The position numbers were made by a program, and so were the translations under genes. A stretch of 64,000 nucleotides of DNA from Rebecca billardiae RCC1528. Taxonomy: Eukaryota > Protista > Haptophyta. Below the pieces are notes generated by a model that made no database searches, had not been told where the DNA came from, and saw only the letters and a list, made by a program, of their open reading frames with translations. Below are positions 16,537 through 52,348 of this stretch, piece after piece; within the stretch, counting starts at the first letter, position 1, and each line of letters opens with the position of its first letter. The stretch covers positions 1,302,001-1,366,000 of the forward strand of contig OZ251244.1 in assembly GCA_965240325.2 (NCBI GenBank), read 5' to 3'.

Positions 16537-18039
16537 ATGACGACCACACGGCGCTCGACGGCGGCGGCGCTGATGACGGAGCTGCCTGCCGAGGTCATCG
16601 AGCGCATCATGCTCGCACTCGATCTGCCGCGTGACCTCGCCGCCGCGAACGCCGCCTCGCGCCTCTTCCGCGGCGCGCCCGGTGGCCGCTCGCCGATCGA
16701 GCACGCGCTGCGCGAGCGCGCTCGCGCGCGTGGGCACGAGCGCGCGCTGCCCAGCGCGCTGCCAGCGGGCGTGCGCACGTGGTCCGAGGAGCTGTTCGCG
16801 CGCGAGGACGTGCTCATGCTGGCGCAGGCGCACGCGCTGCCCGTGGCTGCTGGTGGGTTTGTCATCATGCGCTCGCTGCTGAGCGCGTTTGTGGACGCAG
16901 AGGGCGGGCTGCACACATGCGGCGAGGCGGAGGTGTGGGACGAGGACACCGGGCAGCCGACGGGCGAGTATCGAGCGCACGTGGCCATCGGCCACGCGGG
17001 CGTGCAGCCGGTACGCGTGCCGACGCATGTCGCCTCCCACAGCACCGTGCGCGTGGTCGCGGTCGCTGCCGGCCTTGGGCACGTGCTCGCGCTGAGCGAC
17101 GCCGGCGCCGTGTACAGCTGCGGCGGCAACACGTTCGGCCAGCTGGGGCTGGGGGACGCGGCGACGCGGAGCACATTCACGCAGATGGATGCGCTTGCGA
17201 GCGAACTCATCGTGGGGATCTCTGCATGGGCAGTGCACGGCCTCGCCATTACCGCTGCTGGGCGTGCGTACAGCTGGGGCGACAACTGCTTTGGCCAGCT
17301 CGGCCACGGCGACACGAAGAAGCGGCGGGAGCCGACGCGCATCGAGGCGCTGGACGGCGTGCGCGTGGGCGGCGTGGATGCAAGCAGAGCGCATACGCTG
17401 TTTCTATCTGCGCACGGCGCCGTCTACTCGTGCGGCAGCGGCGCTTTCGGTCAGCTCGGGCACGGCGACCAGCAGAACCAGCACACGCCGACGCGCATCG
17501 AGGCGCTCGCGGGCGTGCGCGCTGTGCACGTGAGCGCGGGCTACTCGCACAGCCTGGTGGTGGACGCAGCGGGCGGCGTGCACTCCTTCGGGGCCGCGTC
17601 CAAAGGCGCACTTGGCCATGAAGACAGCGGGCGCCTCTCGCTGCCCGCGCGCGTGGAGGCACTCGCGGGCGTGCGCGCCGTGCGTGCCTGCGCTGGCTGC
17701 GACAGCAGCGCGGTGCTGGGCGCGGACGGCAGCGTGCACACGTTCGGGAACAACCGCTACTGCCAGCTGGGGCACCAGGGCGATGGCCGCATCATGCTGC
17801 CGACGCGCGTGCACTCGCTTGCGAACGTGCGCGTGGTCAGCTGCTCGATTGGCGTCGGCCACGCGCTCTACGCCGCCGCTGATGGCAGCGTGCACTCGTG
17901 CGGCCAGCGCTCGGCCGCGCTCGGCCACGGTGTGAGCATGGCAGCAAATCACGACGGCGGCGAGGCTGACGCCTGGCGGACGCCCACGCGCGTCGCACAG
18001 CTCCCACGCGTCGCCGCACTGCGGGCGCCGTCGCAGTGA
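16537..18039 (+). CDS. F-box-like + RCC1-repeat protein, copy 1
   Basis: N-terminal LPAEVIERIMLALDLPRDLAAANAASRLF (F-box-like) and about 7 RCC1 repeats (VxAGxxH...G.VYSxGxNxxGQLGHG). Confidence 0.9.
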   Translation: MTTTRRSTAAALMTELPAEVIERIMLALDLPRDLAAANAASRLFRGAPGGRSPIEHALRERARARGHERALPSALPAGVRTWSEELFAREDVLMLAQAHALPVAAGGFVIMRSLLSAFVDAEGGLHTCGEAEVWDEDTGQPTGEYRAHVAIGHAGVQPVRVPTHVASHSTVRVVAVAAGLGHVLALSDAGAVYSCGGNTFGQLGLGDAATRSTFTQMDALASELIVGISAWAVHGLAITAAGRAYSWGDNCFGQLGHGDTKKRREPTRIEALDGVRVGGVDASRAHTLFLSAHGAVYSCGSGAFGQLGHGDQQNQHTPTRIEALAGVRAVHVSAGYSHSLVVDAAGGVHSFGAASKGALGHEDSGRLSLPARVEALAGVRAVRACAGCDSSAVLGADGSVHTFGNNRYCQLGHQGDGRIMLPTRVHSLANVRVVSCSIGVGHALYAAADGSVHSCGQRSAALGHGVSMAANHDGGEADAWRTPTRVAQLPRVAALRAPSQ

Positions 18040-18509
18040 GCTGCGCATCAGGGCGCACACGCCTCTGCGTTGCCGCAGTGGTGCGGCGCCAGGGCAGGCT
18101 GACGGCATGTCCCGGACTCCGTGCCACATGGTATTGGTCATGGACATGCGGCCAGCGCACCGTGTCAATGCGACCGAGACCGGAGACGCGGGCGGCCCTC
18201 GGCCTCACTCAGCCTCGGCAGCGGACGCCGCGCCGCCGGCGCAGAGCGGCGGCGGAGATGCGGGCTCTGGACGAACGGCGGCCCTGCGGCCGGCCTCCGT
18301 CGGCGCCCGACGGCCGATTACCCTGGATGGGCCTTGGCTGTGTACTTAGTTGTAGCTGACCTGCTGACTACAGACTAGCTTACTGTGACTGTGACTGTGA
18401 GTGTGAGCGTCAATCTCAGATCGTCAAAGGCAAACTGTCGCCGATCTCCGGCCAACCGCCATCCACTGCGCCTCACGGCGCCACTTGGCTCGGCTTGCTC
18501 AGCGCGAGG

Positions 18510-20009
18510 ATGACGACGACGCGGCGCTCGACGGCGGCGGCGCCGATTGCGGAGCTGCCTGCCGAGGTCATCGAGCGCATCATGCTCGCGCTCGATCTGA
18601 CGCGTGACCTCGCTGCCGCCAACGCTGCCTCGCGCCTCTTCCGCGGCGCGCCCGGGGGCCGCTCGCCGGTCGAGCACGCGCTGCGCGAGCGCGCTCGCGC
18701 GCGTGGGCACGCTCGCGCGCTGCCCAGCGCGCTGCCAGCGGGCGTGCGCACGTGGTCCGAGGAGCTGTTCGCGCGTGAGGGTGTGCTCAGGCTGGCGCAG
18801 GTGCACGCGCTGCCCGTGGCTGCCGGTGGACGGGCCTTCGGGAGCTCGTCACTGCTGAGCGCGTTTGTGGACGCAGAGGGCGGGCTGCACACATGCGGCG
18901 AGGATGCGGTGTTTGACGAGGACACCGGGCAGCCGACGGGCGAGTATCGAGCGCACGTGGCCATCGGCCACGCGGGCGTGCAGCCGGTAAGCGTGCCGAC
19001 GCACGTCGCCTCCCTCAGCGCCGTGCGCGTGGTCGCGGTCGCCGCCGGCTTTGGGCACGTGCTCGCGCTGAGCGACGCTGGCGCCGTGTACGGCTGCGGC
19101 GGCAACACGTTCGGCCAGCTGGGGCTGGGGGACGTGGCGACGCGGGGCACATTCACGCAGATGGATGCGCTTGCGAGCGAACTCATCGTGGGGATCTCTG
19201 CGCGGTCAGTGCACGGCCTCGCCATCACCGCTGCGGGGCGCGCGTACAGCTGGGGCGACAACTGCTTTGGCCAGCTCGGCCACGGCGACACGAAGACGCG
19301 GCTGGAGCCGACGCGCATCGAGGCGCTGGACGGCGTGCGCGTGGGTGGCGTGGGTGCAGGTGGTGATCACACACTGTTCCTATCTGCGCACGGTGCCGTC
19401 TACTCGTGCGGCAGGGGCTTGCATGGCCAGCTCGGCCACGGCGACCAGCAGGCTCAGCACACGCCAAGGCGCATCGAGGCGCTCGCGGGCGTGCGCGCTG
19501 TGCACGTGAGCGCGGGCGGCGCGCACAGCCTGGTTGTGGACGCTGCGGGCGGCGTGTACTCGTTCGGAGGCGGTCGCCTAGGTCATGGTGACGACGACCT
19601 TCTCTCGCTGCCCGCGCGGGTGGAGACCCTCGCGGGCGTGCGCATCGTGCGCGCCAGCGCTTGCCTCAGCAGCAGCGCGGTGCTGGGCGCGGACGGCAGC
19701 GTGCACACGTTTGGGGACAACAGCAACGGCCAGCTGGGGCACGAGGGCGATGGCCGCCGTATGCTGCCGACGCGAGTGCACTTCCTTGCGACGAACGTGC
19801 GCGTGCTCAGCTGCTCGATTGGCCACCGCCACGCGCTCTACGTCGCTGCTGATGGCAGTGTGCACTCGTGCGGCCAGCGCTCGGCCGCGCTCGGCCACGG
19901 TGTGAGCATGGCAGCAAATCACGACGGCGGCGAGGCTGACCTGCTGCGGACGCCCACGCGCATCGCACAGCTCCCACGCGTCGCCGCACTGCGGGCGCCA
20001 TCGCATTGA
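18510..20009 (+). CDS. F-box-like + RCC1-repeat protein, copy 2 (tandem paralog)
   Basis: Same architecture as copy 1 and highly similar to it in DNA sequence. Confidence 0.9.
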   Translation: MTTTRRSTAAAPIAELPAEVIERIMLALDLTRDLAAANAASRLFRGAPGGRSPVEHALRERARARGHARALPSALPAGVRTWSEELFAREGVLRLAQVHALPVAAGGRAFGSSSLLSAFVDAEGGLHTCGEDAVFDEDTGQPTGEYRAHVAIGHAGVQPVSVPTHVASLSAVRVVAVAAGFGHVLALSDAGAVYGCGGNTFGQLGLGDVATRGTFTQMDALASELIVGISARSVHGLAITAAGRAYSWGDNCFGQLGHGDTKTRLEPTRIEALDGVRVGGVGAGGDHTLFLSAHGAVYSCGRGLHGQLGHGDQQAQHTPRRIEALAGVRAVHVSAGGAHSLVVDAAGGVYSFGGGRLGHGDDDLLSLPARVETLAGVRIVRASACLSSSAVLGADGSVHTFGDNSNGQLGHEGDGRRMLPTRVHFLATNVRVLSCSIGHRHALYVAADGSVHSCGQRSAALGHGVSMAANHDGGEADLLRTPTRIAQLPRVAALRAPSH

Positions 20010-20298
20010 GCTGCCCCTCAGCTGTCACAACCGAATGCGATGCGCGGCGCGCAGCGGGGCATTGCACTTCAGCTCGCCTGCCCAACCTATCTCGCCGACT
20101 CTGCGCTCGCGGGATCGTCCACACGCACGGGAGCGCGGCGCCGTCGCCCGCTCGCCCGAGACGCGCGCGGCAGCCGCGACAGTGAAAGCGCGCGCGCTGG
20201 AACTAAATGCAAAGCGGAAATAATAAAAAGCGCGCCGATTTTCTCGATCCACCCCAGTGCGGCTGGGTGCCGTACGTGTCCCGCCTGGCGGCCTGGTG

Positions 20299-21185
20299 GC
20301 TTGTCCCCTACACCCCTGGCTCGGGGGACGGCTGCCGTGGCGGCGGTGGGTGCGTGCTCGCCGAGCGTCCTAGCGGTCGATTGCGGGGCGTTCCGTGGCG
20401 GCACGCTGGGCTGGGCGGGCCCCAAGACGTAGGGGAACGTCGACAAAGCAGCCCGCTGATGTCTCTCGTCGCTCGTCGCCCTTGCGGTTGGCGCGCGCAA
20501 CCACTTGCGGGCTTGACCTTGTCACTTGTGCGAGCGGTCCCTTCCTGCCAGCCGACTCGACATTTGGGGAGCCTGGGCGCGATGAGATGGCTCGGGGAGG
20601 TGGGGGTATGTATACGCAATGTATACGTACACGCGCGCTGGACGTCCGACCCCGCACGCCGCCTGAAAGAGGTCACGTTTGGCACGCGCCGCGCTCTCGC
20701 ATTTCAAACGTGTTGTGCCGCACGACATTTCCAGAGGCACAGATCACTGATTGAACTGCTTTTCTGGTCGCCGATAGCACAGAAAAGCCTACCCGACTAG
20801 CCCCATGCGTCACGGCCGGGTCTTGAGTGCTACGGCACCACTTGTAGGAGCTTCTTGCCCGCTAGGCACTGCCACAAGCGCCGCGAGCCAGCTTCGTGAG
20901 CATTTGAACGCAGACACAAGGTGCCGAGGCAGTCTTCCGGGCGAGGCAATGGCATGGGAGTCAGCGCCTGGTGTTGTACAAGCAAAGTGACGGCGCGCAC
21001 ACGCGCGACTACGTGCCACAAGGTCTGCGATACCCGCGGGCCGCCACGCTCGCGCGCCCGTCGCTCCTCCAGCCGCCGCTTGGCGACGCAGCCCGGACTC
21101 ACCGCGGCACTGGTCGTCGCCGCCCGGACAATGAGGGGGGGGGGGGGGACCTCGTTGACGAAACCCAGGGGTTTAGGAGACAAGC
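20299..21185. mobile_element. MITE-like TIR element B (887 bp)
   Basis: 21-bp TIRs GCTTGTC(C/T)CCTA(C/A)ACCCCTGG at 20299-20319 and 21165-21185 (2 mismatches). Flanked by TGGTG at 20294-20298 and 21186-21190; an alternative reading is a 7-bp CTGGTGG. Confidence 0.7.
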
Positions 21186-22084
21186 TGGTGGGCAGCCAGA
21201 GGGAGCACGGCCGAACTCGGACTCGTGTGAAGGTCCCTCCCACTGGGACCTTCACACGTCTCGAGGGACCTTCACACGTTCGACGAGTGAAGGTCCCTCC
21301 GCTGGCGCCGCCCGTTGGCGCTGGATGGGATGGCCGCGTGCGTGCGCGAGCGCCCGCCTCGCGTCGCGCGCCCCGCGCGCAGAGCGCGCGCTCGGCCGCG
21401 CGCGACGCGGCGGAGTCGAGGCTGACATGCCCCTGGCCCACTTCGCGCCGCGCAACGCCGCCCACGCCCATCGCCGCTCGCACGCGCAGGCCTGCCGCGC
21501 ACGGCTTGGGCTTTTCAGCACAGGGCTGGCGGCGGCGCGCCGGGCCGAGGGCTCGGCCGGTGTTGTGCCCCTCGGCCAGGCCGAGACTTGGCGGAGGCGC
21601 GGGTAGTGCCATCGCCTGCCCAGATCCCGGGCCTCGCCGTCAGAGTGTGCACGCGAGGCGCGCTGTCGTGGTCGACAGGTGAGGCGCCGCGTGCTCGCCC
21701 TCGAGCGGGCAGCGGACATACCGGCAGGCGCGCGCGCACACAGCGGGGCTGTCGAGCTGCTTCCGGCTGGGCAGCTCGACGGCGCGTGCCCTGGCCCTGG
21801 TCTGGGAGGCGTGCGCGGGTTCGGAGGCCGGTGAACGCTCGGCGCGGACCCACGTGTCTTGCCGGGCACGGTTGCGCGACAGCTCTGCAGCCAGTCTCGA
21901 GGCTGAGTGGCATCAGAGCGCTTGCCGGCGTGCTGGCGGGCTCAGCCGCCGGGCCGATGCCCACGCCTTGGCCGGGATGCGACCGGCATCCGCGTCCTCC
22001 GCAGCCGCCTGGAGCCGTCGACCCGCTGCCCACGGCCCGCGGCCGGCAGGCCGCTTGGCGGATGGCCAGAGGAGCAGGCGGCCG

Positions 22085-22760
22085 AGCCGGCTGGGCGGCA
22101 GCGAGGGTGGTGGGGATGGAGGCGGGCTCGGCGGCGGAGGCGGCGGAGGCGGGCTTGATAGCGGGCTCGGCGGCGGCGAGGATGGCAGGTTCAGTGCTGG
22201 CGATGACGGTTGGCTTGGCGGTGAGCTCGGCGGTGGCTGACGTGGCAGACTTGGCGGTGGGATCGGCTGCCGGCGGCTTGGTGGCAGCGGAGGCGGCGGC
22301 GACGGGATCGAGCTCGGCGGCGTGGTCGGAGGCGGTGCTGATGGCGGCGATGATGGTAGCGGGCTTGTTGGCAGCGATGTAGGCAGCGACGGCTGCGGGC
22401 TCAGCGGCGGGCTTTGTGGCGGCGATGTAGGTGGTGATGACGGTGGTGGGCTCAGCGGCGGGGTCGGTAGCGGCGACGGCAGCGGCAGGCTCGAGGTGGG
22501 CTTGGTGGCGGTGATGGCGGCCGGGCTCGGCTATGGACTTTGCGGCGGTGGGCTCGGGGGCGGAGTCGGTGGCGGCGAAGGTGGCGAACCCAGCGCTAGG
22601 CTTGGCGCTGGGGTGGAGGAGACGGGCTTGGTTGTCCGTGGTGGGCTTGGTGGCGGCGATTTGGCGATGATGGCTGTGAGCGGCGGAGTGGCCGTGAGCT
22701 CGGCAGAGGTGACGGTGGCTCGGGAACGGTGGCTGGCTCGGCGGCGGCTTCGGCGGCCGC
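22085..22760 (-). pseudogene. Decayed Ser/Pro-rich (SPPP/extensin-like) coding fragment inside element C
   Basis: The minus strand reads PPPPSPP-type repeats broken by frameshifts. Confidence 0.4.

Positions 22761-26891: not shown

Positions 26892-26892
<1 letters not shown>

Positions 26893-26928
<36 letters not shown>
26893..26928 (+). repeat. (TC)n microsatellite
   Basis: Direct reading of the sequence. Confidence 0.95.
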
Positions 26929-26931
<3 letters not shown>

Positions 26932-27045: not shown

Positions 27046-28845
27046 TCAGCACGCGGCGGCCGTCGCGACGGCGCGGGACGACGCGTCGGCGCGCGCGCAC
27101 ACGTCGGCACGCAGCCGGGCGGGTGATGGCGCGTCGTCGCCGTCGCCGCCGTGCGCGCGTCCGCCCTCGAGCTGCTCGAGCTTGCGCTCCAGCGCCGCGT
27201 CGCACCGGCCGAGCACGAGCGCGCTCGCGCCGAGCAGCGCGAGCGCGCCCCCGAGCAGCACCCACAGTCCGGGCAGCGCGCGCGCGGAGACGGCGAAGCA
27301 TCGCGTGTCGCCGCCGAGGAGGTCGGCGGCGTGCGCGGCGAGCAGCGCGTCGAGCGCGTCGCAGCGGCCGCGGAGGACGTACGCGCCGAGCCGCTCGAGC
27401 TCGGACGCCGCCGCGAGCAGCGCGAGGCCCAGCACGTCCGCCGCCGCCAGCGCGTCCAGCAGCTGCGCCGCGTGCAAAGCAAACGCCTGCGCGCGCGCCG
27501 GCAGCGGCGCCAACCATAGAGCGAGCAGCGCGGGCGGCAGCAGCAGCGGCGCGAGAACATGCAGCCCAAAGTACGCGCCCGCGAGCGCGGCGCGCGCGCC
27601 GACGGGCGCGAGGCCCGCCGCGGCGGGCAGCGCGCGCCCGAGGCCCCACACCGAGAACTCGCGCCGCGCGCGGCCGCCTAGGTCGCCCATTGGGTTAGGG
27701 TTAGGGTTAGGGTTAGGGGGGGTAGGGTTAGGGTTGCGGCCTCCCAGCAGCAGCGCGGCCAGGCCGTGGAATTCGACGCGGAAGGAATCGAGCGCGAGGC
27801 CGGCGCAGAGCGCGCCGAGCGCGAGCGGGAGCGCGCAGAGCGCGCAGTGCAGCCGCGCCGCCGCGCGCCGCGGCCGCGCGTGCGCAGGCGCGCACGCGCG
27901 CAGCGACGCCCACCGCGCGCCGCCGCGCGCCGCCGAGGCCGGCGCGGCGGCCGCGGGGGCGGCCATGGCGCCGCCGGCGGCGGCGTCGGCGTCGGGGGCG
28001 GGCGCGTCGCCGTCGGCGGGTGCGGGCGCGGGCGGCTCCGCCGCGCCTGCGCGTGGCCGTGGCGAGACGGCGCCCTCCGCTGCTGCCGCCGGCGCCGCGC
28101 CGCCGCGCTCGCCCTCGCCCTCGCCCTCCTCCGCGGCCGCGACGGCCGGCGGCGCCGCGGCCGCCGCCGCGCGGCGCGCGCGCCGCTCGGCCGCGGCGGC
28201 CACCGCGACACAGCCGTGCGAGAGGGCGATGGAGGCGAGGGTGGTGCCGAGCAGGCCGTACAGCCCGCGCGCCGGGAGCACGTGCACGGAGAGCTCGCCG
28301 AGCGGCGCGCTGCCCTCCGGCAGCCACGCCGCCGGCAGCTCGATCCGAAGCCAGAACGCAACGGCCGCCACCTCGATGACGGTTACGTCGAGTAACGACA
28401 TTTTGCCCAGCGCGTGCAGCCAGCGCAGGATGGCTGCCGCGTGCGCGCGCGGCAGCGCGCTGCCGGGCGCGAGCCAGCACGCGAGCACGCACGCGAGCTT
28501 GAGCACGGGCCACACGCCCGAGAACGCCGCGAGCGCCACGCCCACCGGCGCCAGCCCGTCGCGCGCCATGTCCGCCATGAGGCCAGCCAGCGAGAATTCG
28601 TAAAGCGGCGGCGGTCTGTAGTCAACGCCGAGAGGCGCCGAGTGCAGCCGGAGGACGAGCGCCGCGGAGGTCTGCGTGTTCGACCAGCAGAAGGCGCAGA
28701 GCGCGCACAGCGCGCACGCCGTCACGCCGAAGCCCACCGCCGGGCTCACCTCCGCCGCGAGCGAGCCGCGCAGCGCGCGCGCGAGCGCGGCGCGCGCGCG
28801 CGCGCGGCGCGCGCGCGCTGCGCCGAGCCACGACTGCCGGGCAGG

Positions 28846-28886
<41 letters not shown>

Positions 28887-31800
28887 CGCCGTCGCCGCCG
28901 GCGGCTGGGCGGCACGCGCTGGCGCCGGCGTGCCGCGCGGCCTCCACGTCGGCGTGCGGCGTGCGCGCCGTCCCCAACGCCGCCGCCGCCGCCGCCGCTG
29001 CCACCGCGTCGGCGTCGATGTCGCGCCCTGCGCCGCCGCTGCCTAGGTTAGGGTTAGGGTTAGGGTTAGGGTTAGGGTCGAGCGGGCGCGCGCGGCGGCG
29101 CCAGCGCCGGAGCCAGAGAGCGTACCCGCCGCACGCGGCGCACGCCGCGGCGCCGAGCGCGGCGAGGAGCACGGCCGTCGCCGTCTGCACGCCGCCCGCC
29201 CCGCCCGCCGCCTCCGCCTCCGCGCCCGCCGCCTCCGGCGCCGCCTCGGGCCCGCCATCGCCGCACGCCGCGCGCGCGCGCTCGATCGCCGCGCGCAGCG
29301 CCGAGTTGATTGCGGGCGTTACCCATGTGGGTAGCGCGAGCGCCAGCGCGTCGCTGAGCGCCGCGCCGAGCAGGTCCTCGTCGGTCGCGGCGAGCCCGTC
29401 GCGCAGCGCCTCGAGCCGCACGCCGCGGCCGTCTCTGGCGGCGCCCGCCGTTTCCGCCGCGCGGCCGCCGCCGGCGGCGCCGTCGGCGGCGGCGGCGGCG
29501 CCGCCGCGCGGCGTCGGTGGCGGCACGCCGGTGCCGGCGGCGGCGGCGAGCGCCGTCCCGGACGATCGGGTTTCGTCAAGCGAGAGCCGGGCGGCGCCGA
29601 CGCTCGCGTCGAGCTGCGTGAGCGCGGCGGAGTGCACGCTCGCGAGCACGCACGCCCAGCCGCCACCGCCGCCCCCTGCCTCGCCGCCGCCGCCGCCCTC
29701 CGCGCCCGCCTCGCCGCCGCCGCCGAGCAGCGAGCTCAGTGGCACAGCGTGGAGCGCCGCGCGGCGCACGCGCGCGTCCAGCCCGAGCGCGAGGCGCAGC
29801 CGGCGCAGCTCGAGCGTGGCGCGCGCGCCCATGTCCAGCGCGAGCGAGCCGCCGCCGCCGCCGTCCGCGCGCGCACCCTGCAGCAGCACACGCACGGCGG
29901 CGGACGCGCTCAGCGGCCGCCGGGCGCGCGCGCGCGCCGCGTCGGCGGCGGCGTCGGCGGCGGCGGCTGCTACCGCGGAGTGCTGCCGGCCGTCCTCGGG
30001 CTCGTCGCCGAGCGTGAGCTCGGACGCGAGCACGCGCGGCCGCCCGCTCGGCCCCCCCTCCGGCCGGACCGGACTCGTCCGCACCGGACTCGTCCGCACC
30101 GGACTCGTCCGCACCGGACTGAGTAAGTCAAGGGTACCCACGGTATCTAGTCCGCGCACGCGGCCGTCGGCGACGCGCGCGGCCGCGCGGCCGACGCCGC
30201 CGCCGAGCGAGCCGCGCGCGCGGCCGAGCTCGCCAGGGAGGTCGAGGCCGCCGCTCGCGCCGTCCGCGGGCGCGCACGGCCGCGCGCGCTGCGCCGCGGA
30301 CGCCGCCTCCGCCGAGTCCTCCCACGGCGACGAGGCCGCGACCGCGCCCTCGCCCGGCCGCGCCTCACGCGGCGGCGGCGGCGGCGGCGGGCTTAGCATC
30401 TCTGGCAGTGCCGCGCGCAGCAGCGCGTTCAGCCGAGCCGGCCCGAGCAGCTGCTGGCTGAGCGTGCGCAGCGCGGCAAGCGGCGGGTAGGCGGGCCACT
30501 CGATCAGCTCGGTCTCGTCAGCGGCCGCCGCCGCCTCGCACGCGGCGGCGGGTGCCGCCGTCCGGTTGGCCGCCGCGCCGCCGCCGCCGCCGCCGCCACC
30601 GTCGGCGTCGGCGTCGGCGGACGTGGCCAGCATGGCCGCCGCCGCGCGCGCGGCGATGCCTCGCGCCTCGTCGGCCGCGAGCAGCCACTCGGCGAGGGCG
30701 GGCAGCGCGCGCTCGGGGTACGCCTCGCCCAGCGTGCGCGCCGCCTCGTCCAGCGCCTCCGCCAGCGCCGCCGCGCCGCCCTCGTCCGAGCCCGCCGCGG
30801 CGCTCAGCAGTCGAACGCGCGCGCCGCGCACCGCGCCGCTCGCGCTCAGCGCCCGCAGCTGAATCAGAGGCGTATCCGGGGCGGGAGGCCGGGCGCGGGC
30901 GCACGGGCGCGGCGTGGTAGGGCTGCCGTCGGTGTCCCCGCTGCGCCCGTCCCGAGGCGCCGCCGCCGCCTCCTCGCCGAAGAGCACGCGGGTCACGTCG
31001 CCCAGAGTCAGCCCTGCCTCAGGCTCGGCGCCGCCGCCGCCGCCGCCGCGCGCCGCCGCCTCCGCCTCCGCCTCCGCCTCCGCTGCGGCGGCGCGCGGCG
31101 CGGGCGCGGAGGTGTTGATGGCGACGAGGGCGGTGGCGCCGAGGGCGGGCTGGAGGAGGCGGAGCTCGAGGGCGAGGCGCGCACACAGCCACGCCGGTCC
31201 CGACCCCTCCGACCCCCGCCGGCGCAGCTCGAGCCGAACCGTCGCGCTCACGCCAAGCTCGGCCAACGCGGCGCGCGCCGACACGCTCTGCGCCTGCGCG
31301 GGCACGGGCAGCAGCGGCTGCAGCGCGCGCAGGCTGCCGAGGCCTCGGAGCTCGAGCGCCTCGAGGCCGAGGGAGGCGGTGCCCATGCCGAGCGGGAGCT
31401 CGGCTCGCTCGAGCACTGCCCATGCCGCCGCCGCCTCCGGCCCCGGCCGCTCCGCCGCGGCGGCGGCGGCGGCGGCTTCAGCCTCCGAGCCGGACGGTCC
31501 GGGAGCGGTCCGGGAGCGCTCCGGGACGGCGGCGGCTTCCGCAGCCGCAGCCATCCGAGACTCGGATGGCGGCGGCGCTGGCGCGAGGCGCAATGTGCCG
31601 CCGCGGCCGAGGGCGAGCTCGGCCGCGCTTGCGCCGAGCTCGGCGGCGACGTCGGCGCCGAGGCGGGCGACGACGCGCTCGGCGGCGGCGGCGAGGCCGG
31701 TGAGGTTGAGCGCGCCGCGGATGTGCCGCGGCGCCGGCGCGCGCACCGCGGGCACCGCCTCGTCGCAGCCGCGCGCGCCGGCGCGCGCCGCGTCGGCCGC

Positions 31801-33394
31801 GGCCTCGAGCCATCCGTCGGCGAGCGCCGCGGCCGGCGCCGCGACCGCCGCCTCGGCGAGGCCGGCGAGGAAGGGCGTGAGCTCGGCGGCGGCGGCGTGG
31901 AGCAGCGCGAGCACGGCGCCGCGCAGCGCTGACCACAGACCCGCCGCGCCCTCCGCCGCGCGCACGTCTGTTCCGAGCAGCTCCAGCCGCCGCACGCCGA
32001 TCGAGCCGACGCGCGCGCCGACGGCGCGCACGCGCGGCGGCCGCGCGGCCGCGCCGAGCGCGCCGCCGAGCGCGCACGCCGCGGCGCGCGCGGCGGTCGG
32101 GTGCGCGAGGAGCGCGGCGGGCGCGGTGCGCCGGCGCAGCTCGGCCGCGCACAGCGGCACCTCCGCGCGCGCGCCCAGCGCCACGTCGCGCAGCTCGACC
32201 TCAATCTGCATGCCGCTGAGCAGTGGCACCCAGGCAGAGTTGTCGGCGGCGGCGGCGGCGCCGTCGCCATCGCCGCCCGCCGCGCCGGGCGCGGGGCCGG
32301 TGCCGTTCTTGGCTGAAGTATCGTTCGCTGGCGGGTGTGGCGGCGGCGCCGCCGCGCCGGCCGCGCCGGCCGCGCGCTGCGATGGCGCGCCGTGCTCGTC
32401 GGCTGCGAGGAGCGCCCACCGCGCCGCGCCGACTGCGCCCCCCGCCCCTCCGTCGGCGGCGGCCGCGGCGGCCGCTGCAGACTCAGCAGAGCCCGCGGCT
32501 GCGGCCGTTCCGTTGAGAATCTCGAGAGAAAGAACGGCGCGCACGCTGAGCGCTCGAAGCGCGAGGCTTGCATCCAGCTCGGTTAAGCCCGGCGGCGGCG
32601 CGTGCCGGAGGAGGTCGCCGGCCCCGCCCGCGCCGCCGGGGCCGGGCTGGGCGGCGGCGGCGGTGCCGTTGGCGGCGCTGCGCCCGCCGCCGCCGCCCGC
32701 GCCCGCCGGCGGCGGCGCCGCGGCGTCCTCGGCTGCTCCGCCCTCATCGCCGCGCGGCGGGCTGGGCGGCAGTCTGCAGACCCGGACCTGCGCCCCGGAC
32801 TCCCCCCCCGACAAGCGGTGGAGTGGGGGTTGGTCCGGTGCGGTCCGGCTGCAGACTGGGATGGGCGGCTGACGGCACGAGCCTCGGGCTGTGCACCGTC
32901 TCGAGCCCGCCCAGCCGGAGCTCCCTCGCGACCAGCCGCAGCGCCCCAACCGCCGGGACGCCCCCGAGCGCGCCGAGCGCGCCGCCGAGCGCGCCGCGCG
33001 CCGCCTGCGGCGCGAGCGGCAGTAGTAGCGACGCGGAGGGCAGCGGCAGCTCGAGCGATGGCGGCGGCGATGGCGGCGGCTGCGCACCGGACTCGTCCGC
33101 ACCGGACTGTAGTGGCGACGGCGGCGGCTGCGCGTCCGACGAGTGGTTTGCAAGGCCGAGCGCGGTGCTGTTCTCGCCGCTCGCGCCGCGCGTCTCGTTG
33201 CCCCCGCCGCCGCCCTCGCCGCCGCCGGCGCCGCCGCCACCGTCGCCGCCGCTCAGCGCGCTTGCGAGCGCGCGCGCGGCGGTCGCGAGGTCGAGCGCGC
33301 CGCCCGCGCCGAGCAGCGCGCTCGCGGCGGCCGCGGCGGCCGTCGCGGCGGCCGAGTCGGCCCACGCGACGAGCGCCTCGTCCGGCGGCGCTGG

Positions 33395-33425
<31 letters not shown>

Positions 33426-33928
33426 GCCGAGGGCGGCAGCGCGCATTCGCTCTCTCGCGCGCGCGCCGCGTCGACCGCCGCGCGCAGCCGCGCTCGCACG
33501 AGCTCGCTGAGCGGGCCCGCCACCGCGCCCTCTGCGGCGGCGGCGAGCTGCGCCGCCCAGCGCGTCGTGACCACGTCGCCCACCGCGTTCGCCACGCCCA
33601 CCGCGTCCGCCCACAGCACCCCCGGCGCGTGCCCCTCGCCGCCACCCTCCGCGCCCGCGCCACCCTCCGCGCCCGCGCCACCCTCCGCGCCCGCGCCACC
33701 CTCCGCGCCCGCGCCCGCCGCCTCGGCGCCAGGCCCCGCGCCCAGCGCGCTCAGCCGCGCCCACAAGGAGCCCGGGCGCACGCTGGCGCGCGCGCGCACG
33801 AGCGTGAGGCGCTCCGTGTCCAGCGCGGCCAGGGCGCAGTCGAGCGCGAGGCGCGCGCCGCCGCCGGGGGTGCCGCCGCCCCCCTCGCCCGGCCCAGCGC
33901 CCTCCTCCGCCTCCGCCTCCGCCTCCGC

Positions 33929-33982
<54 letters not shown>

Positions 33983-35464
33983 GCGCCGCCGCTGTTGCCG
34001 AGGCGAGTGCGCGCCCTCGTGGCCTCCGGTAGCCTCACCGAGCAGGTGCCGCGGCTGCACCGCCGCCAGCCGCTCGGCGACCAGCGGCACGTTGAGCACG
34101 ACCGACAGCGACACGTCGGCCGCGCCCAGCTCGACGGTCGCGCGCTCGCACAGGCCGGCTAGGAGCGCGTAACCGCCACCGGCGTAACCGCCATCGACGT
34201 AACCGCCACCGGCGGAACCGCCACCGGCGGAACCGCCATCGGCGGAACCAGGCGCGATCGCGAGGCCCGCGCGCGCCGAGAGGCTGCGCAGCCGCAGCTC
34301 GAAGACAAGCCCCGACGCGTTGGCCGCGGCGAGCGCCGCGTCGGCGTCGAGAAAGAGGGAGGCGCCGTGACGCGAGGCGCCGCCGCCGTCCCCGCCGGTG
34401 GCGGCGGCGGCGGCGAGCGCGGCCGGCGTGGCGAGCCGCGCGGCGCTGAGCGTGCTGAGCCCGCCGACCCAGTCCGGCGCAACGCGCAGCGTGGAGTTGG
34501 GCAGCCCGGGCACCTCGCCCTCCGTGCGAAGCGCCCGCGCATCGAGCAAGAGCGAGCCCGGCGGCGCGCCCGCCGCCGCCGCCACCTCCGGCGGCTGCGC
34601 GAGGCTTAGCAGTGCGCCTGCCGCCGCCGGGAGGTCGACTTGGAGCGGGTCGGCGAGGGCGGCGTTGAGCGCGGCTGCAATGGGCGCCCACTCGAAGGGC
34701 GGCGCCGCGTCGGGCACGCCCGCGCCCCCGCCGCCGGCCGCCCAGTCGAACGCGCCGGCGGTGCGCGGGATGGCGGCCAGCGGCGGCGGCGCCGCCAGAA
34801 ACGGCGCGGCCGCAGCCGTCGCGTTCGCCAGGATGGCGGGGAGGTTGAGCCCGGCGAGCAGCGCGCGCGCCGCCTCGCACAGCTGCGGGCCGAGCTGCGC
34901 CTCGAGCCCCGGCCGGATCGCGCCGCTCAGCATGTCGAGCAGCGCGGCGCTCAGACCGCCGGAGAAGCTAAGAGCGCTCAGAGAAAGAGCGGCGGCGCAC
35001 TCGACGATGCGCACGTCTGTGAGGAGCCCGTGCGGCCCGCCGCCGTCGTCGGTGGCCTCGAGGGTGAGGAGCATGGACGAGCCCTCTGTCGCCGCGGCCA
35101 GCGCGCCCGAGCCGTACGGAAAGCCCAGCAGCGACTGCTCGAACGCGTAGGCTGCGGTGCACTCGAGGCCGAGGCCGGTGGCGGTGACGGTGACGGCGCC
35201 GCGCTCCGGGTGCGGCGTTGCGTGGACGCGGCCGACGCGAAGGCGCGCGCACGCGATGTCCGAGACCTCTCCCTCGAACGACGCGTACGCGAACCCCTGC
35301 GCAGCCTCCACCGCCACCGGCTGCGCCGCGAGGAACGCCTCGATCGAGCGCGTGCGCAGGCCGGAGCACTCTGGCGCGGCGCGCTCGGCCGCGGCGCGCG
35401 CGCCGGCCGGCGGGCGGAGGGCGAGGGCGAGGAGGGCCAGGGCGAGCACGCGCGCCGGCGGCAT
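27046..35464 (-). CDS. Giant secreted/membrane protein with BPI/LBP(TULIP)-like N-terminal modules and C-terminal PqiA-like membrane domains
   Basis: Signal peptide MPPARVLALALLALAL. BPI-like strand/helix segments (GLGLECTAAYAF...VECAAALSLSALSFSGG...QLC). C-terminal FSL...AAFSGVWPVLKL...LHALGKMSLLDV (PqiA-like). Two long ORFs are joined by a frame change near 32790-32870. Confidence 0.65.
27692..27735. repeat. Interstitial telomere-like (TTAGGG)n tract
   Basis: About 7 units with variants, inside the giant ORF (reads PNPN). Confidence 0.9.
29046..29078. repeat. Interstitial telomere-like (TTAGGG)5 tract
   Basis: In frame within the giant ORF (DPNPNPNPNPNL). Confidence 0.9.
30068..30120. repeat. 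15-bp tandem repeat ACCGGACTCGTCCGC (about 3.5 copies), encoding SPVRT
   Basis: Direct reading; a related copy lies at about 33086-33108. Confidence 0.85.
33640..33712. repeat. 18-bp coding minisatellite (4 copies), encoding AGAEGG
   Basis: GCCACCCTCCGCGCCCGC units. Confidence 0.85.
33942..33980. repeat. (GTC)n coding microsatellite (poly-Thr on the minus strand)
   Basis: Direct reading of the sequence. Confidence 0.9.
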
Positions 35465-43153: not shown

Positions 43154-43259
43154 GCATGTCCGGCGCGTTTCGTCGTAAGTACTAAGTACGCGGGAGTTCG
43201 CGCTTGTCGCGCGGCGCAGCGCCCGCACGGTGGCGAGCGGTCAGCACAACGGCCGCACG

Positions 43260-46979: not shown

Positions 46980-47234
46980 TTCGGTCAACACCCGTGGCAG
47001 CACTCACGCCGCTGGACGGAGCGACGACGGCGAGCGGCGGTATCAGCAGCAGCGCCACTGATGACGATGGTTGATGGCCTGGTGCGGCGGCGTGTGGCTC
47101 GCGAATGCTGCGATCGACCTCTGCTCGAACGACTGCGCGGCAGCCGACACCGGTTTCGACCGGGCCCGGCTGGCGACTAGCCGGAGCGGACCACCCGCTG
47201 CACCAGGCCGCCCAGCTTTCATCAATCGCCGAAG

Positions 47235-48815
47235 ATGCACCCGACGAGCGCTCCCGCCGGAGGGCAGCGGCGCGAGGCGGGTCAAGCGCCCGTGACGCGG
47301 CTGGCCGAGCTGTCGCCCGCGGCGATCACGCGCATCGTCGGCTTCCTCGACTCGGCGCGCGACCTCGCGGCGGCCAACGCCACCGCGCGCCTCTTCCGCG
47401 GCGCGCCGGTCGAGGCCGCGCTGCGCAAGCGCTCGCTGCTGCGCGGGCACGCGCGCGCGCTGCCGGCGGCGCTGCCCGCGGCCGCGCGCACGTGGACGGA
47501 GGAGCTCTTCGCGCGCGAGGCGGTCCACGCGCTCGCGTGCGCGCACTCGCAGGTCGCCGTCGCCGGCCGCAGCTACGGCAGCGCCGCGCGCTCGTCCGCG
47601 TTTGCCGACGCGGCCGGCGGCGTGTACACGTGTGGCGAGGAGTTCTACGTGGCGCGGATCGGCGTGGCGCCGCAGCTGCGCTGCCCGATCCCGCTGGGGC
47701 ACTCGGACCCGACCGACGCGCCGCCGGTCGCCGTGCCGCGCCGCGTGCCCTCCCTCGGCGCGGTGCGCGTGCGCGCGCTCGCCGCGGGCGACGGACACCT
47801 GCTCGCGCTGAGCGCCGCCGGCGCCGTGTACAGCTGCGGCATGGACGACTGCGGCCAGCTGGGCGTGGGCGACGTGGGCTGGGCGCGCGCGTTCACGCCG
47901 GTGGTCGCGCTCGCCGCCGTCGACTGCGCCGTCGGCATCGCCGCCGGCTACTTCCACTCGCTCGCGCTCGGCGCGGGCGGGTGCGCGTACAGCTGGGGCG
48001 ACAACCAACGGGGACAGCTCGGCCACGGCGACACGGAGCCTCGGTTCGCGCCCAAGCGCGTGGCGGCGGTGGAGGGCGTGCGGCTCGGCGGGCTCGCGGG
48101 CGGGCTGGCGCACACGCTGCTGCTCGGCGTGGCCGGCGAGGTCTACTCGTGCGGCGAGGGCCGCTCGGGCCAGCTCGGCCACGGCAGCCGCGCGGAGCGG
48201 CGCGCGCCGACGCGCGTCGCGGCGCTCGCGGGCGTGCGCGCCGTGCACGTGAGCGCGGGCGAGGAGCACAGCCTGGTGGTGGACGCGGAGGGGCGCGTGC
48301 ACGGCTTCGGCGACAGCGGGGGCAGCGGGCGGCTCGGCGGGGTCCACGCCGAGCACGCCGACCGGCTCACGCCCAAGCCCATCCAGGCGCTCGCGTCCGT
48401 GCGCGCGGTGTGCGCGAGCGCGGGCAACATGGCATCGGCCGTCGTCGGCGCGGACGGGCGCGCGCACACGCTCGGCGACAGCCTGCGCTCCCAGCTCGGC
48501 GCGGTGCCGGTGGCCACGGGGCCGGAGCAGAGCCGCGCGACGGTGCCGCCGATCGGGCACGTGGTCGGCGTCTCGCTCGGCGAGAACCACGCGCTCTTCG
48601 TTACCGCCGACGGGGGCGCGTACTCCCTCGGCGGCTGCTCGGCCGCGCTCGGCCACGGGCTCGAGCTCAGCATGGCGCACGGACTGAGCGGGGTGCTGGG
48701 CGAGCCGAGGCGCGTCGCGGAGCTGCCGCCGCTGCGCCGCGTGCGGGTGGCGGCGGCGGCGGCGGCGGCGCCGGCCGAGCGAGCCGAGGGCGCGCCGGAG
48801 GGCGTGGCGCAGTGA
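47235..48815 (+). CDS. F-box-like + RCC1-repeat protein, copy 3 (divergent)
   Basis: LAELSPAAITRIVGFLDSARDLAAANATARLF followed by RCC1 repeats colinear with the other copies. Confidence 0.88.
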   Translation: MHPTSAPAGGQRREAGQAPVTRLAELSPAAITRIVGFLDSARDLAAANATARLFRGAPVEAALRKRSLLRGHARALPAALPAAARTWTEELFAREAVHALACAHSQVAVAGRSYGSAARSSAFADAAGGVYTCGEEFYVARIGVAPQLRCPIPLGHSDPTDAPPVAVPRRVPSLGAVRVRALAAGDGHLLALSAAGAVYSCGMDDCGQLGVGDVGWARAFTPVVALAAVDCAVGIAAGYFHSLALGAGGCAYSWGDNQRGQLGHGDTEPRFAPKRVAAVEGVRLGGLAGGLAHTLLLGVAGEVYSCGEGRSGQLGHGSRAERRAPTRVAALAGVRAVHVSAGEEHSLVVDAEGRVHGFGDSGGSGRLGGVHAEHADRLTPKPIQALASVRAVCASAGNMASAVVGADGRAHTLGDSLRSQLGAVPVATGPEQSRATVPPIGHVVGVSLGENHALFVTADGGAYSLGGCSAALGHGLELSMAHGLSGVLGEPRRVAELPPLRRVRVAAAAAAAPAERAEGAPEGVAQ

Positions 48816-49300
48816 CCGCCATCACAGACACAGGCGGCTGACGCAGACGACAGCCGTGACGGGCGTCGCTCGGAGCCGCCGCCGCGCCGCGGCTGAGGCC
48901 TCAGCCCGGAGGCATCTGACGATGGCGCAGGCGGAATGCGGTGACGACGGCAGCAGCGCCTCGCAGGGCCATGCTCGGCCCGGCGTCTGACGTTGCGCTC
49001 GAAGCGTCACGAGTACCAGTCTTACTCATTGTAGTGGCCCGCCAGAACTTCCGCCGATCAAACTAGCGCTGCTACTCCGAGCAGCGCCGACGTTACGCGC
49101 GGGCTCCGCAGAAATCCGGTATCATAGCTACCAGCGCTCCCGACCGGACGCGCGGACCGCGCGCAAGGCGCTCGTTCGTGGCCACTTCCCTATGGATTTC
49201 CTAGTCGCCGCGCAGTCTGAATACGGGATTTGGAACGGCCGCCACACAGCACACAGTGGTGAGCACCACCGAGCATCCGCCGACGACCCAACGCGCGGGA

Positions 49301-50025
49301 ATGGCGATCCTCAAAGAGTGCGCGCGCGGGTGCGGCGCGCGCGCGGCGTGGCGCTGCGCGCTGACGCTGGTCCCCTCCCACCCTCGCTCGCCCGCGCGCG
49401 GCGCAGCTACGCTGAGCACGAGGGCGCGGACGAGGGCGCGCGCGCCGCGGTCGACGGCGTCCCAATCGACGGGCTGCCCACGGCCATCGCGGTGCCCGTG
49501 GGCGCGGCCGGCGAGGCCGCGGCGTCCGACGCCGCCGGCGCGGAGCCCGCGGCGGAGGAGGACGCGCGCGCCCTCGTCGAGCGGCGCAAGCTCGCCGCCG
49601 GCGTCGTGGGCGCCGCGGGCGGGCTGCTGCTGACGGGCAACATGCTGTGCTCCGCGCTCGCGGGCGGCGCGGCTGCGTACGCGACGACGATGGAGGGCGA
49701 CGTGGGCGCGGCCGCGCGGCGCGTGGCGGACGGCGCGGCGGAGACGTACGACAAGGCGCGCGCCGCGATGCGCGAGCGCGGCGTCGGCGGCGCCGCCCGC
49801 GTCGCCGCCGGCGCGGCGCGCTCGGCCGCTGTGGACGTGGACGACCGACTTGGGCTGAGCGCGCGCGCGGACGTGATCAAGCGCGACGTGGCGCGGAAGG
49901 TGGACGGGCTGCGCGGCGCGCGCGACGCGTCGCTCGTGGCCGCGGACGCCGCCGAGTCCGGGGCGGCGCAGCCCGCTGCGAGCGGCGCCGAGACGGCCGC
50001 TGGCAAGATGGCCGCCGCCGTATGA
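49301..50025 (+). CDS. Hypothetical protein with glycine-zipper-like hydrophobic segment, intron at 49318-49406
   Basis: The splice gives MAILKD|YAEHE..., followed by AAGVVGAAGGLLLTG...AGGAAAYAT and an amphipathic helix. Confidence 0.6.
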
Positions 50026-50872
50026 GCCGCGGACTGGCTGGGGCAGCCACCAAGGGCAGTGGACCCGGCGCGGTCCTCGGACTGGCAGTCCGGTGCTGCC
50101 GCCACGGGGCGAGTCACAGCGCCCCGGGGGCAGCCGGCACCGTGTCCGCCGTCGGCCGCCTGCGGGCGAGCGCCGGTCCGCGGCCGCGCCGCAGTCAGTG
50201 CCACTATGAGACTCACCGAGGCCGCACTGCCCGGGCCCGGCGCCGGCGTGCCGCCGACCCTGCTGGCTGCTGCTCGACACGGTCGTGGCCGTTACTGTCA
50301 CACTGTGACTGGCCGTGGGTCCTGGACCTGAGGTCGCGGCATATCAGTCGTATACATGATGACGACGATATGATTAACATTATACGCCGCCGCCATATGC
50401 GGCCACCCGCGCCACTTAATTCGTCCTATCGCGCCGATCGCCTCATCAGCATCATATATATATATACTACATCTATCAGCACTGTCAGCAGACGCGCGCG
50501 GTAATAACGTAAACGGTTACGCCTACAGGCTACACGCCCACGGCTACACTCTACGACTACAGTCTGAGTGAGTACGACAAACTGTAGCGCGCGCAGCAGC
50601 GCGGAATGGCAGTAGAGTCGACGGTACCGAGCTCAGTTCACTCTGCTATCTGCATGCATGACGGCCACGGACAAGCGTCATCATCGTCAGGCTCAGAGTG
50701 CAGCGCGCCAGTCTTGCAGACATCATATACGCATCACATAGAATGCGTCCGCGTCTTCCGTCTCCGACCAGGTCTAAGGCAGTGCGCCACCCGCAGCCCT
50801 GCCCCCCTACGGGAGCCGGGCCGGGATGGAGCACCGCCTCGGCCTGGGGCGTATAGCAGCACATGCGCCCCC

Positions 50873-52348
50873 TCACTGCGAGGGCGGCCGCAGTGCGGCG
50901 ACGCGCGGGAGCCGCTCGATGCGCGTGGGCGTCCGCCAGGCGTCAGCCTCGCCGCCGTCGTGATTTGCTGCCATGCTCACACCGTGGCCGAGCGCGGCTG
51001 AGCGCTGGCCGCACGAGTGCACGCTGCCATCAGCGGCGACGTAGAGCGCATGCCAGTCGCCGATTGAGCAGCTGACCACGCGCACGTTCGCAAGGGAGTG
51101 CACGCGCGTCGGCAGCGTGATGCGGCCCTCGCCCTGGTGCCCCAGCTGGCAGTAGCGGTTGTCCCCGAACGTGTGCACGCTGCCGTCCGCGCCCAGCACC
51201 GCGCTGATGTCGCAGCCAGCGCCCGCGCGCACGGCGCGCACGCCCGCAAGGGCCTCCACGCGCGCGGGCAGCGAGAGGCGCTCGTGGTCACCATGGCCAA
51301 GCTGACCTGCATACGCGGCCCCGAACGAGTGCACGCCGCCCGCTACGTCCACCACCAGGCTGTGGTTAGAGCCCGCGCTCACGTGCACGGTGCGCACGCC
51401 CGCGAGTGCCTCGATGCGCGTCGGCGTGCGCTGATCACGCTGGTCGCCGTGGCCGAGCTGGCCATACGCGCCCGAGCCGCACGAGTAGACGGCGCCATCC
51501 GCCGATAGGAACAGCGTGTGCTCACCGCCTGCACCCACGCCGCCCACGCGCACGCCGTCCAGCGCCTCGATGCGCGTCGGCTCCCGCCGCTTCTTCGTGT
51601 CGCCGTGGCCGAGCTGGCCAAATTCGTTGAAACCCCAGCTGTACGCGCGCCCCGTAGCGGTAATGGCGAGGCTGTGCGCTGACCACGCAGAGATCCCCAC
51701 GATGAGTTCGCTCGCAAGCGCATCCACCTGCGTGAACGTGCCCCGCGCCGCCGCGTCCCCCAGCCCAAGCTGGCCGTCCCAGTTGTGGCCGCAGCTGTAC
51801 ACGGCGCCGGCGTCGCTCAGCGCGAGCACGTGCCCAAAGCCGGCCGCGACCGCGACCACGCGCACGCCGTTGAGGGAGGCCACGCGCGTCGGCACGCTTA
51901 CGGGCTGCCAGCCCGCGTGGCCAATAGCCACGTGCGTACGGAACTCGCCTGTCGGCTGCCAGTTGACATCGTCGCACACCGCCTCCTCGCCGCACGTGTG
52001 CAGCCCGCCCTCTGCGTGCACAAACGCGCTCAGGCGCGAGCGTATGAGGCCCATCCCACCAGCAGCCACGGGCAGCGCGTGTGCCTGCGCCAGCTTGAGC
52101 ACGCCCTCAAGCGCGAACAGCTCCTCGGACCACGTGCGCACGCCCGCTGGCAGCGCGCTGGGCAGCGCGCGCTCGTGCCCACGCGCGCGAGCGCGCTCGC
52201 GCAGCGCGTGCTCGACCGGCGAGCGGCCACCGGGCGCGCCGCGGAAGAGGCGCGAGGCGGCGTTGGCGGCAGCGAGGTCTTGCGGACGATCGAGCGCGAG
52301 CAGGATGCGCTCGACGACCTCGGCAGGGAGCTCCGCAATCGTCGTCAT
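50873..52348 (-). CDS. F-box-like + RCC1-repeat protein, copy 4
   Basis: Highly similar to copies 1 and 2, inverted and about 31 kb away. Confidence 0.9.
   Translation of the reverse strand: MTTIAELPAEVVERILLALDRPQDLAAANAASRLFRGAPGGRSPVEHALRERARARGHERALPSALPAGVRTWSEELFALEGVLKLAQAHALPVAAGGMGLIRSRLSAFVHAEGGLHTCGEEAVCDDVNWQPTGEFRTHVAIGHAGWQPVSVPTRVASLNGVRVVAVAAGFGHVLALSDAGAVYSCGHNWDGQLGLGDAAARGTFTQVDALASELIVGISAWSAHSLAITATGRAYSWGFNEFGQLGHGDTKKRREPTRIEALDGVRVGGVGAGGEHTLFLSADGAVYSCGSGAYGQLGHGDQRDQRTPTRIEALAGVRTVHVSAGSNHSLVVDVAGGVHSFGAAYAGQLGHGDHERLSLPARVEALAGVRAVRAGAGCDISAVLGADGSVHTFGDNRYCQLGHQGEGRITLPTRVHSLANVRVVSCSIGDWHALYVAADGSVHSCGQRSAALGHGVSMAANHDGGEADAWRTPTRIERLPRVAALRPPSQ

Follow-up and report, generated by a model that had tools for sequence, protein, structure and literature searches.

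A 64-kb stretch of the haptophyte Rebecca billardiae RCC1528 (contig OZ251244.1, positions 1,302,001 to 1,366,000 of the forward strand, assembly GCA_965240325.2; GC 65-84%) carries a small family of related genes, and the question raised by this locus is why close copies differ at the same few places in one propeller blade after another. This whole stretch is referred to below as the window and positions are counted from its first letter. The window contains four paralogs, all of them intact, intron-less open reading frames (ORFs) within 36 kb, with a predicted F-box-like N-terminus followed by an RCC1-like propeller. Our analysis of their sequences supports the idea that these genes belong to an F-box/RCC1 adaptor family that may be diversifying on one face of the propeller. 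We consider it probable, although well short of certain, that the family consists of substrate receptors of SCF-type (Skp1-cullin-F-box) ubiquitin ligases and that these form a diversifying recognition repertoire on that face. The four genes are as follows.

16534..18039, forward strand: copy 1 (c1), 501 amino acids from the conserved ATG, from the ORF and its translation
18507..20009, forward strand: copy 2 (c2), 500 amino acids, with the ORF also called from 18495
47235..48815, forward strand: copy 3 (c3), a divergent paralog of the same layout, from tblastn, translation and alignment
50873..52351, reverse strand: copy 4 (c4), an inverted paralog of 492 amino acids from the conserved ATG, with the ORF reaching 52435

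The proteins encoded by c1, c2, and c4 are 78-85% identical. c2 is a tandem paralog 0.5 kb downstream of c1 and is 84-85% identical to it at the protein level. c3 is about 49% identical to the other three proteins (tblastn E-values of 1e-111 to 1e-115) and has a GC content at third codon positions (GC3) of 0.97. The start ATG common to c1, c2, and c4 sits in GAGGATGACGA at positions 16534, 18507, and 52351. In-frame ATGs farther upstream (16411 in c1 and 52435 in c4) differ between the copies and are not conserved; the one in c1 yields a 542-aa ORF (16411-18039). After the start MTT, c1 (16546-16572) and c2 (18519-18545) have nine extra codons encoding TRRSTAAAL/P that are not found in c4.

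An initial annotation of this DNA had claimed that differences between c1, c2, and c4 are concentrated at two places in successive blades, the pair of residues before a conserved His and the GxNxxG loop. For this we aligned the seven blades with one another and marked as loop columns the positions ahead of the conserved His and those of the GxNxxG loop. This gave 49 columns across all blades, including blade 7, which is invariant, and blade 2, which is nearly so. Among the three copies, 40 of the 49 loop columns are variable, whereas in the rest of the propeller this is true of 55 of 384 columns (Fisher p 1e-21), so that the clustering is far beyond chance. Columns that differ in all three copies make up 15 of 49 in the loops and 5 of 384 elsewhere in the propeller (p 8e-12). 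All of the residue strings quoted in the initial annotation are present as quoted in our alignment of the copies. In the order c1/c2/c4 these include WAVH/RSVH/WSAH, SRAH/GGDH/GGEH, and GYSH/GGAH/GSNH before the His, GGNTF/GGNTF/GHNWD and GNNRYC/GDNSNG/GDNRYC in the GxNxxG loop, and FVIMRSL/RAFGSSSL/MGLIRSR in the first loop. Beyond the first two clusters there is a third in the GD-x-x-x-x loop after GQLGHGD, where the copies read QQNQH/QQAQH/QRDQR. Whole codon pairs had also been described as swapped between conserved flanks. The three pairs were found exactly where they had been placed, and their flanks are identical (GCGGGC ... CACAGCCTG).

17542..17547, forward strand: hot codon pair of c1 before the His of blade 5, TAC TCG (YS)
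19518-19523, forward strand: matching hot codon pair of c2, GGC GCG (GA)
51365-51370, reverse strand: matching hot codon pair of c4, TCT AAC (SN)

The further statement that the copies are nearly identical even at synonymous sites was only roughly true, since silent divergence between them is 0.15-0.18. No tandem repeat of blades at the DNA level was found in c1 or c2 with Tandem Repeats Finder.

To gain an estimate of selection at the variable (hot) columns, we compared non-synonymous (dN) and synonymous (dS) divergence among c1, c2, and c4. With the Nei-Gojobori method, the ratio dN/dS (omega) was about 0.57 for the whole gene, with a dS of 0.15-0.18. In the hot columns omega was 1.4-2.4 and dN was 0.53-0.67, compared with an omega of about 0.34 in the rest of the propeller and 0.3-0.55 in the N-terminus. 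Because a GC3 of about 0.86 could distort the silent-site counts of this method, we also used maximum-likelihood codon models. These were our own versions of MG94 and GY94 with F3x4 frequencies, a three-taxon star tree of c1, c2, and c4, and a separate omega for each partition, applied to a broad hot set of 49 columns and a strict set of 30 columns fixed by the repeat register. When all partitions shared one silent rate, omega was 3.3-4.7 in the hot columns and 0.21-0.33 in the cold ones, and the likelihood-ratio test of a hot omega of 1 gave p values of 2e-8 to 2e-11 for the broad and strict sets alike. Silent divergence is elevated in the codons beside the hot codons, with a proportion of silent differences (pS) of 0.24 in the one or two adjoining codons versus 0.13 from three codons out, and for this reason the models were refitted with local branch lengths. 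When the silent rate was taken locally, from the hot codons and two flanking codons on each side with their own branch lengths, omega was 2.0 at the hot codons versus 0.10 in the flanks (p 0.007). The hot codons alone, on their own branch lengths, gave an omega of 2.3 (p 0.05).

A similar pattern was observed in relatives of the window genes. Our scan of Joint Genome Institute metagenomes yielded 165 coding stretches of an Emiliania huxleyi-type family, and 80 of these (L003-L082), which are marine and almost all from two samples, were analysed. The 50 full-length genes have a median protein identity of 74% and the family is only 38% identical to the window copies. About 30 columns in these 50 genes have an entropy of at least 3 bits, and almost all of them lie in the AG-xx-HS, WG-x-G-xx-G-x-LG, and D-x-Q-x-Q motifs of each blade, which are the same motif positions as in the window copies. 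Each of these hypervariable columns holds 11-18 different residues and they are rich in G, D, S, Y, A, and F. The proportion of non-synonymous differences (pN) in them is 0.64, compared with a gene-wide pS of 0.26 and a pN of 0.07 in conserved columns. The blades of this family form a tandem repeat at the DNA level with a period of 156 bp, 5.8 copies, and 83% matches (L004, gene e.g. 669-1582). The E. huxleyi-type family shows the window pattern again, and more strongly. It also provided an independent hot set that removes the post-hoc choice of columns: the 29 columns with an entropy of at least 3 bits, taken from this family only, gave an omega of 2.5 versus 0.35 when applied to c1, c2, and c4 (p 3e-5). 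Omega at the hot positions was therefore above 1 under each baseline that we tried (2.0-4.7), which is in line with the diversifying selection proposed in the initial annotation. Among these clustered paralogs, of which three are close and recombine, this is combined with an omega of 0.3-0.55 in the N-terminus.

Several points weigh against this conclusion. The local non-synonymous excess is about 2-fold rather than 4-fold because pS is raised beside the hot codons, and the test on hot codons alone is borderline. Two or three bases differ at 15-18 of 44 hot codons, and standard codon models are known to overestimate omega when changes span more than one nucleotide. The comparison involves three close paralogs only, with exchange of segments between them; a single star tree and a single silent rate are approximations here and the p-values are rough. 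An alternative would be neutral change, in which the loops are free of constraint, or mutate unusually fast at these spots by multi-nucleotide or short-tract replacement, and the rest of the gene is held by gene conversion and purifying selection without any selection for diversity. In an RCC1 propeller, constraint is weakest on the surface loops, and the raised silent divergence directly beside the hot codons, the many hot codons with two or three base differences, and the borderline hot-only test (p 0.05) all fit such neutral change. So does the lower GC3 at the hot codons (0.80 versus 0.86 in the window copies and 0.68 versus 0.855 in the hypervariable columns of the E. huxleyi-type family), as would result from recent mutational turnover. 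However, unconstrained sites in a homogenised gene should match nearby silent sites and not exceed them by 2-4 times. The excess is also local, falling on a few codons that recur at equivalent places in the structure, since codons at least three positions away from hot codons have the baseline silent rate and a pN of only 0.02. In addition, these positions show hypervariability again in a family of only 38% identity, with 11-18 residues per column. On balance, we regard neutral change as an unlikely explanation.

The boundaries of similarity between the copies bear on how the rest of the gene stays alike. We compared the flanks 16384-16543, 18357-18516, and 52342-52501 (reverse strand) and the 3' flanks of c1, c2, and c4. 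DNA homology extends no more than about 30 nt upstream of the ATG and no more than 12 nt beyond the stop; it is lost within about 10-40 nt of the ORF ends despite a silent divergence of only about 0.15. Along the three genes, the copy that is the odd one out changes in a mosaic pattern (runs test p 0.004). Together, the mosaic pattern and the coding-limited homology at this silent divergence suggest gene conversion restricted to coding sequence among c1, c2, and c4. The hot codons and only one or two neighbouring codons escape this homogenisation (pS 0.24 versus 0.13), which is what selection for diversity predicts. We rejected the idea that the hot sites are old divergence spared by gene conversion, since pS is raised only one or two codons away and is at baseline from three codons out. 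That idea is a variant of diversifying selection rather than a rival to it because selection against homogenising those codons would still be needed.

Two other sources of such a pattern were also considered and rejected. Retroposition could cause homology to end at the ORF ends, but there is no poly(A) tract after the c1, c2, or c4 ORFs and no shared untranslated region beyond about 30 nt. A diversity-generating retroelement is not favoured because the hot-codon changes involve all four bases and not adenines only; no search for a template repeat was made.

The location of the variable positions on the protein was examined with structural models. The propeller of c1 is delimited as follows.

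16837..18036, forward strand: seven-bladed RCC1-like propeller of c1 with the hypervariable positions, from Foldseek and phmmer

Pfam scores for c1, c2, and c4 are 216-236 bits for WD40_RLD (cut-off 150) and 203-228 bits for RCC1 (cut-off 21.7), with E-values for c1 of 9.8e-64 and 4.9e-62, respectively; the RCC1-like assignment of c3 comes from tblastn and alignment. The AlphaFold2 model of c1 has seven blades, a mean predicted local distance difference test score (pLDDT) of 90.5, and a predicted template modelling score (pTM) of 0.91. Its top Foldseek match is UVR8 (E 9e-37, template modelling score by target 0.92, 27% identity), followed by the RCC1-like domains (RLDs) HERC2 RLD2/3 (root-mean-square deviation 1.8 for RLD3) and HERC1 RLD3. 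UVR8 is also matched by c1 in a phmmer search of the PDB (E 1e-66). In the phmmer alignment, the pair before the His aligns with UVR8 W233/R234, W285/R286, and W337/R338, with the blade 5 codon pair (YS/GA/SN) at W233/R234. The third variable slot of the GxNxxG loop aligns with D96 and the variable residue after GHGD with D107. In UVR8, inter-monomer salt bridges link R286, which is beside W285, to D96 and D107, and the remaining chromophore tryptophans are flanked by R234 and R338 (PMC5091643). Because all three variable clusters align with residues of the UVR8 dimer face, the hypervariable positions appear to correspond to one face of the propeller, equivalent to that dimer face. Judged from this alignment, the variable residues would lie on one face and not be scattered, as the initial annotation had supposed. 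We excluded a UVR8-type UV-B photoreceptor, since the tryptophan triad of the GWRHT motifs is absent and the equivalent positions read YS/GA/SN, AV/SV/SA, and RA/GD/GE.

The N-termini precede the propellers in all four copies and were delimited as follows.

16567..16836, forward strand: F-box-like motif (LPAEVIERIMLALD..RDLAAANAASRLFRG) and helical linker of c1, from alignment, helices, and profile and structural matches
18540-18809, forward strand: F-box-like region and linker of c2, from alignment
47295-47549, forward strand: F-box-like region and linker of c3, from alignment
52076-52339, reverse strand: F-box-like region and linker of c4, from alignment

The AlphaFold2 model of the N-terminus (pLDDT 84) has helices at residues 19-28, 32-41, 54-65, and 83-100. 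Evidence that this region is an F-box comes from Pfam, profile, and structural matches. PF12937 (F-box-like) is matched at an E-value of at most 0.01 by 30 of 48 aligned relatives (best 3.7e-7) and PF00646 (F-box) by 18 of the 48. When a 25-sequence N-terminal profile that includes wider relatives was compared with the PDB, FBXO31 (E 0.019), cyclin F, and FBXW7 came first, with chains of MAX2 lower, and each PDB match falls on the F-box of its target. The top ten VIA-align matches of the N-terminal model are all F-box proteins, aligned over the F-box and linker with Z of 3.6-6.9. They include FBXO31, Cdc4, Fbs2, FBXO42, FBXW8, Fbw7, MAX2, and Skp2, and several have been solved bound to Skp1, among them the propeller-bearing Cdc4, Fbw7, and FBXW8. 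The layout is also alike, since a helical linker leads into the propeller both here (RCC1) and in Cdc4 and Fbw7 (WD40). In our view the N-terminus is very likely an F-box joined by a helical linker to the propeller, as in those two proteins.

Two of the results count on the other side. Among the window copies, c4 alone has an F-box-like match in Pfam (E 0.016, residues 33-65), and its 15.4 bits are below the cut-off of 24.3. The VIA-align Z values are below 8 and in the range that the tool calls common for small helical domains. An N-terminal F-box, as originally proposed for these genes, is supported indirectly at the level of the family by the Pfam, profile, and structural matches, but the window copies themselves fall below the Pfam cut-off. 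It could be that the N-terminal helices are merely F-box-like and that these proteins are ordinary RCC1-like regulators or scaffolds (e.g. of small GTPases), with the paralogs subfunctionalised to different partners. RCC1-like domains have many roles outside ligases, and such an interpretation would agree with the sub-threshold Pfam scores in the window. It would also agree with the seven-sequence N-terminal profile of the window subfamily alone, which had no F-box match in the PDB, and with the Foldseek E-values for the N-terminal model, which are above 1 and non-significant, although Fbw7 is first. By contrast, the Pfam matches in relatives, the order of PDB hits for the wider profile, and the ten best VIA-align matches, several of them Skp1-bound, all point to an F-box. 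A feature-based Atlas search likewise lists haptophyte clusters with RCC1 and the annotation 'F-box domain-containing', together with plant 'UVR8-like' clusters and vertebrate FBXO24. Proteins with no SCF role are thus an improbable explanation in our judgement, and we continue to favour SCF-type receptors.

We also searched for further members of the family. In a collection of 5.8 billion proteins, no protein was more than 52% identical to the window family. A large set of proteins from metagenomes, about 470 amino acids long, has the same layout, LLDLPxELLxRV...DIARVAAVSLLFH and then RCC1, and its nearest named relative is a protein of E. huxleyi CCMP1516 annotated 'E3 ubiquitin ligase'. The metagenome scan with the window subfamily gave no match. 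Among sequencing runs, a first search for further copies found none and a second found one public run. Compared with window positions 50700-52600, this run contains 69 short contig pieces that are 80-95% alike; they fall on the coding sequence of c4 and none fall on its 5' flank. This would fit, though weakly, the presence of many diverged copies in that other data set.

The viral collection held no close relatives and only one RCC1 gene, at 33% identity. This gene (L083, 3001-5073, on a 110-kb IMG/VR contig) encodes an RCC1-repeat protein that is similar to the window family over residues 85-479. Land-plant 'UVR8-like' proteins of about 490-525 amino acids (Asparagus P0108 and Atlas clusters) have a similar N-terminal LPxxL...DL...CRLFRG before the RCC1 propeller, and the F-box/RCC1 layout may be old and mis-annotated in plants.

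The other genes of the window are of eukaryote type and include a galactosyltransferase, WSC, major facilitator superfamily, and FAM221/Tudor genes. Positions 28000-34000 have 82% GC and long ORFs in several frames. A putative 2,063-aa ORF at 27046-33240 on the reverse strand has a weak PqiA match only.

Taken as SCF-type substrate receptors, the four proteins would work in the following manner. The N-terminal F-box and linker, kept by purifying selection, would dock on Skp1, and a target protein would bind to one face of the seven-bladed propeller and be ubiquitinated. Three short loops of each blade would form this face (the pair before the His, the GxNxxG loop, and the one that follows GQLGHGD). 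Change would be limited to the residues of these loops and would outpace that at silent sites, while purifying selection and exchange of segments by gene conversion within coding sequence would keep the rest of the gene alike. In this way, the paralogs may share one scaffold and yet differ from each other in what they bind. The targets could be foreign or selfish proteins that evolve fast, for which giant viruses are one candidate source, or else non-self proteins from within the species.

Haptophyte blooms are terminated by giant viruses, and clustered ubiquitin-ligase adaptors whose fast-evolving residues appear to lie only on one propeller face would be a concrete candidate recognition repertoire for these algae. 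Host-virus or self/non-self recognition in haptophytes would then become directly testable. More speculatively, haptophytes including the E. huxleyi lineage could have a large germline repertoire of SCF F-box/RCC1 receptors that sends proteins of giant viruses or parasites to the proteasome. The binding face would be diversified position by position, would be rich in Gly, Asp, Ser, and Tyr, and in E. huxleyi would be carried on cassette-like tandem blades. We hold this extended idea only tentatively. If it is true, a major phytoplankton group would possess a family of intracellular innate immune receptors with a new architecture. The diversity could instead serve conflict within the species and not defence, for example self/non-self or mating recognition resembling that of plant S-locus F-box proteins, or, as for certain F-box genes of Caenorhabditis, selfish elements and hybrid incompatibility. 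Expanded and fast-evolving nematode F-box families are reported to be tied to such conflicts (PMC11573670, PMC12951971, PMC12680543). This possibility shares its molecular mechanism with the SCF-type repertoire that we propose and differs from it in the targets alone, and no evidence here separates it from an anti-pathogen role. We consider within-species conflict somewhat unlikely. We found no published description of this family in the literature and none of an immune-receptor-like repertoire in haptophytes.

As a comparison, in the F-box families of nematodes and plants the F-box is under purifying selection and the domain that binds substrates is under positive selection (Thomas, 2006, cited in PMC8120010). 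The window genes are similar in being a clustered multi-gene family with an F-box-like N-terminus under purifying selection and positive selection in the recognition domain. They differ from those families (FTH, FBA, Kelch, leucine-rich repeat [LRR]) in having an RCC1-like propeller, in having a few loop positions per blade fixed by the repeat register, and in their algal lineage. The NOD-like receptors HET-E, HET-D, and NWD of fungi have WD40 repeats with high internal conservation and hypervariable positions (PMC4986451, PMC12222747). They resemble the window genes in carrying, on one face of a beta-propeller, hypervariable positions that are fixed in each blade, where the face in the window proteins is assigned by equivalence to UVR8. 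They differ in that the repeat here is RCC1 and the partner is an F-box rather than NACHT with a death effector. This comparison, first drawn in the initial annotation, fits the E. huxleyi-type relatives, which share the DNA-level tandem blades, better than it fits the window copies, whose blades are not tandem repeats at the DNA level.

Mammalian HERC5 and HERC6 also combine an RCC1-like domain with ubiquitin-type ligase function and fast evolution, and HERC RLDs are among the best structural matches of c1. HERC6 is reported to evolve rapidly and an overlooked immune role of HERCs has been put forward (PMC7775381). By contrast with the window genes, HERC5 and HERC6 are single HECT ligases with one or few copies and not an F-box repertoire. 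Arabidopsis UVR8 is the closest solved fold, and the hot positions align with residues of its dimer face; unlike the window proteins, it has a conserved GWRHT triad at positions that are variable here and has no F-box. The same two-domain layout of F-box and RCC1 is found in vertebrate FBXO24, a cluster of which is among the Atlas matches, and in yeast Saf1. These are single-copy, without reported hypervariability, unlike the genes described here. Together, these comparisons place the family with a known kind of system, F-box adaptor families with a diversifying substrate domain. New features are the use of an RCC1 propeller as the module that diversifies, its pairing with an F-box in a repertoire, and the lineage. 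It would add the RCC1 propeller to the scaffolds of diversified recognition, which include LRR, WD40, ankyrin, tetratricopeptide repeat, and immunoglobulin.

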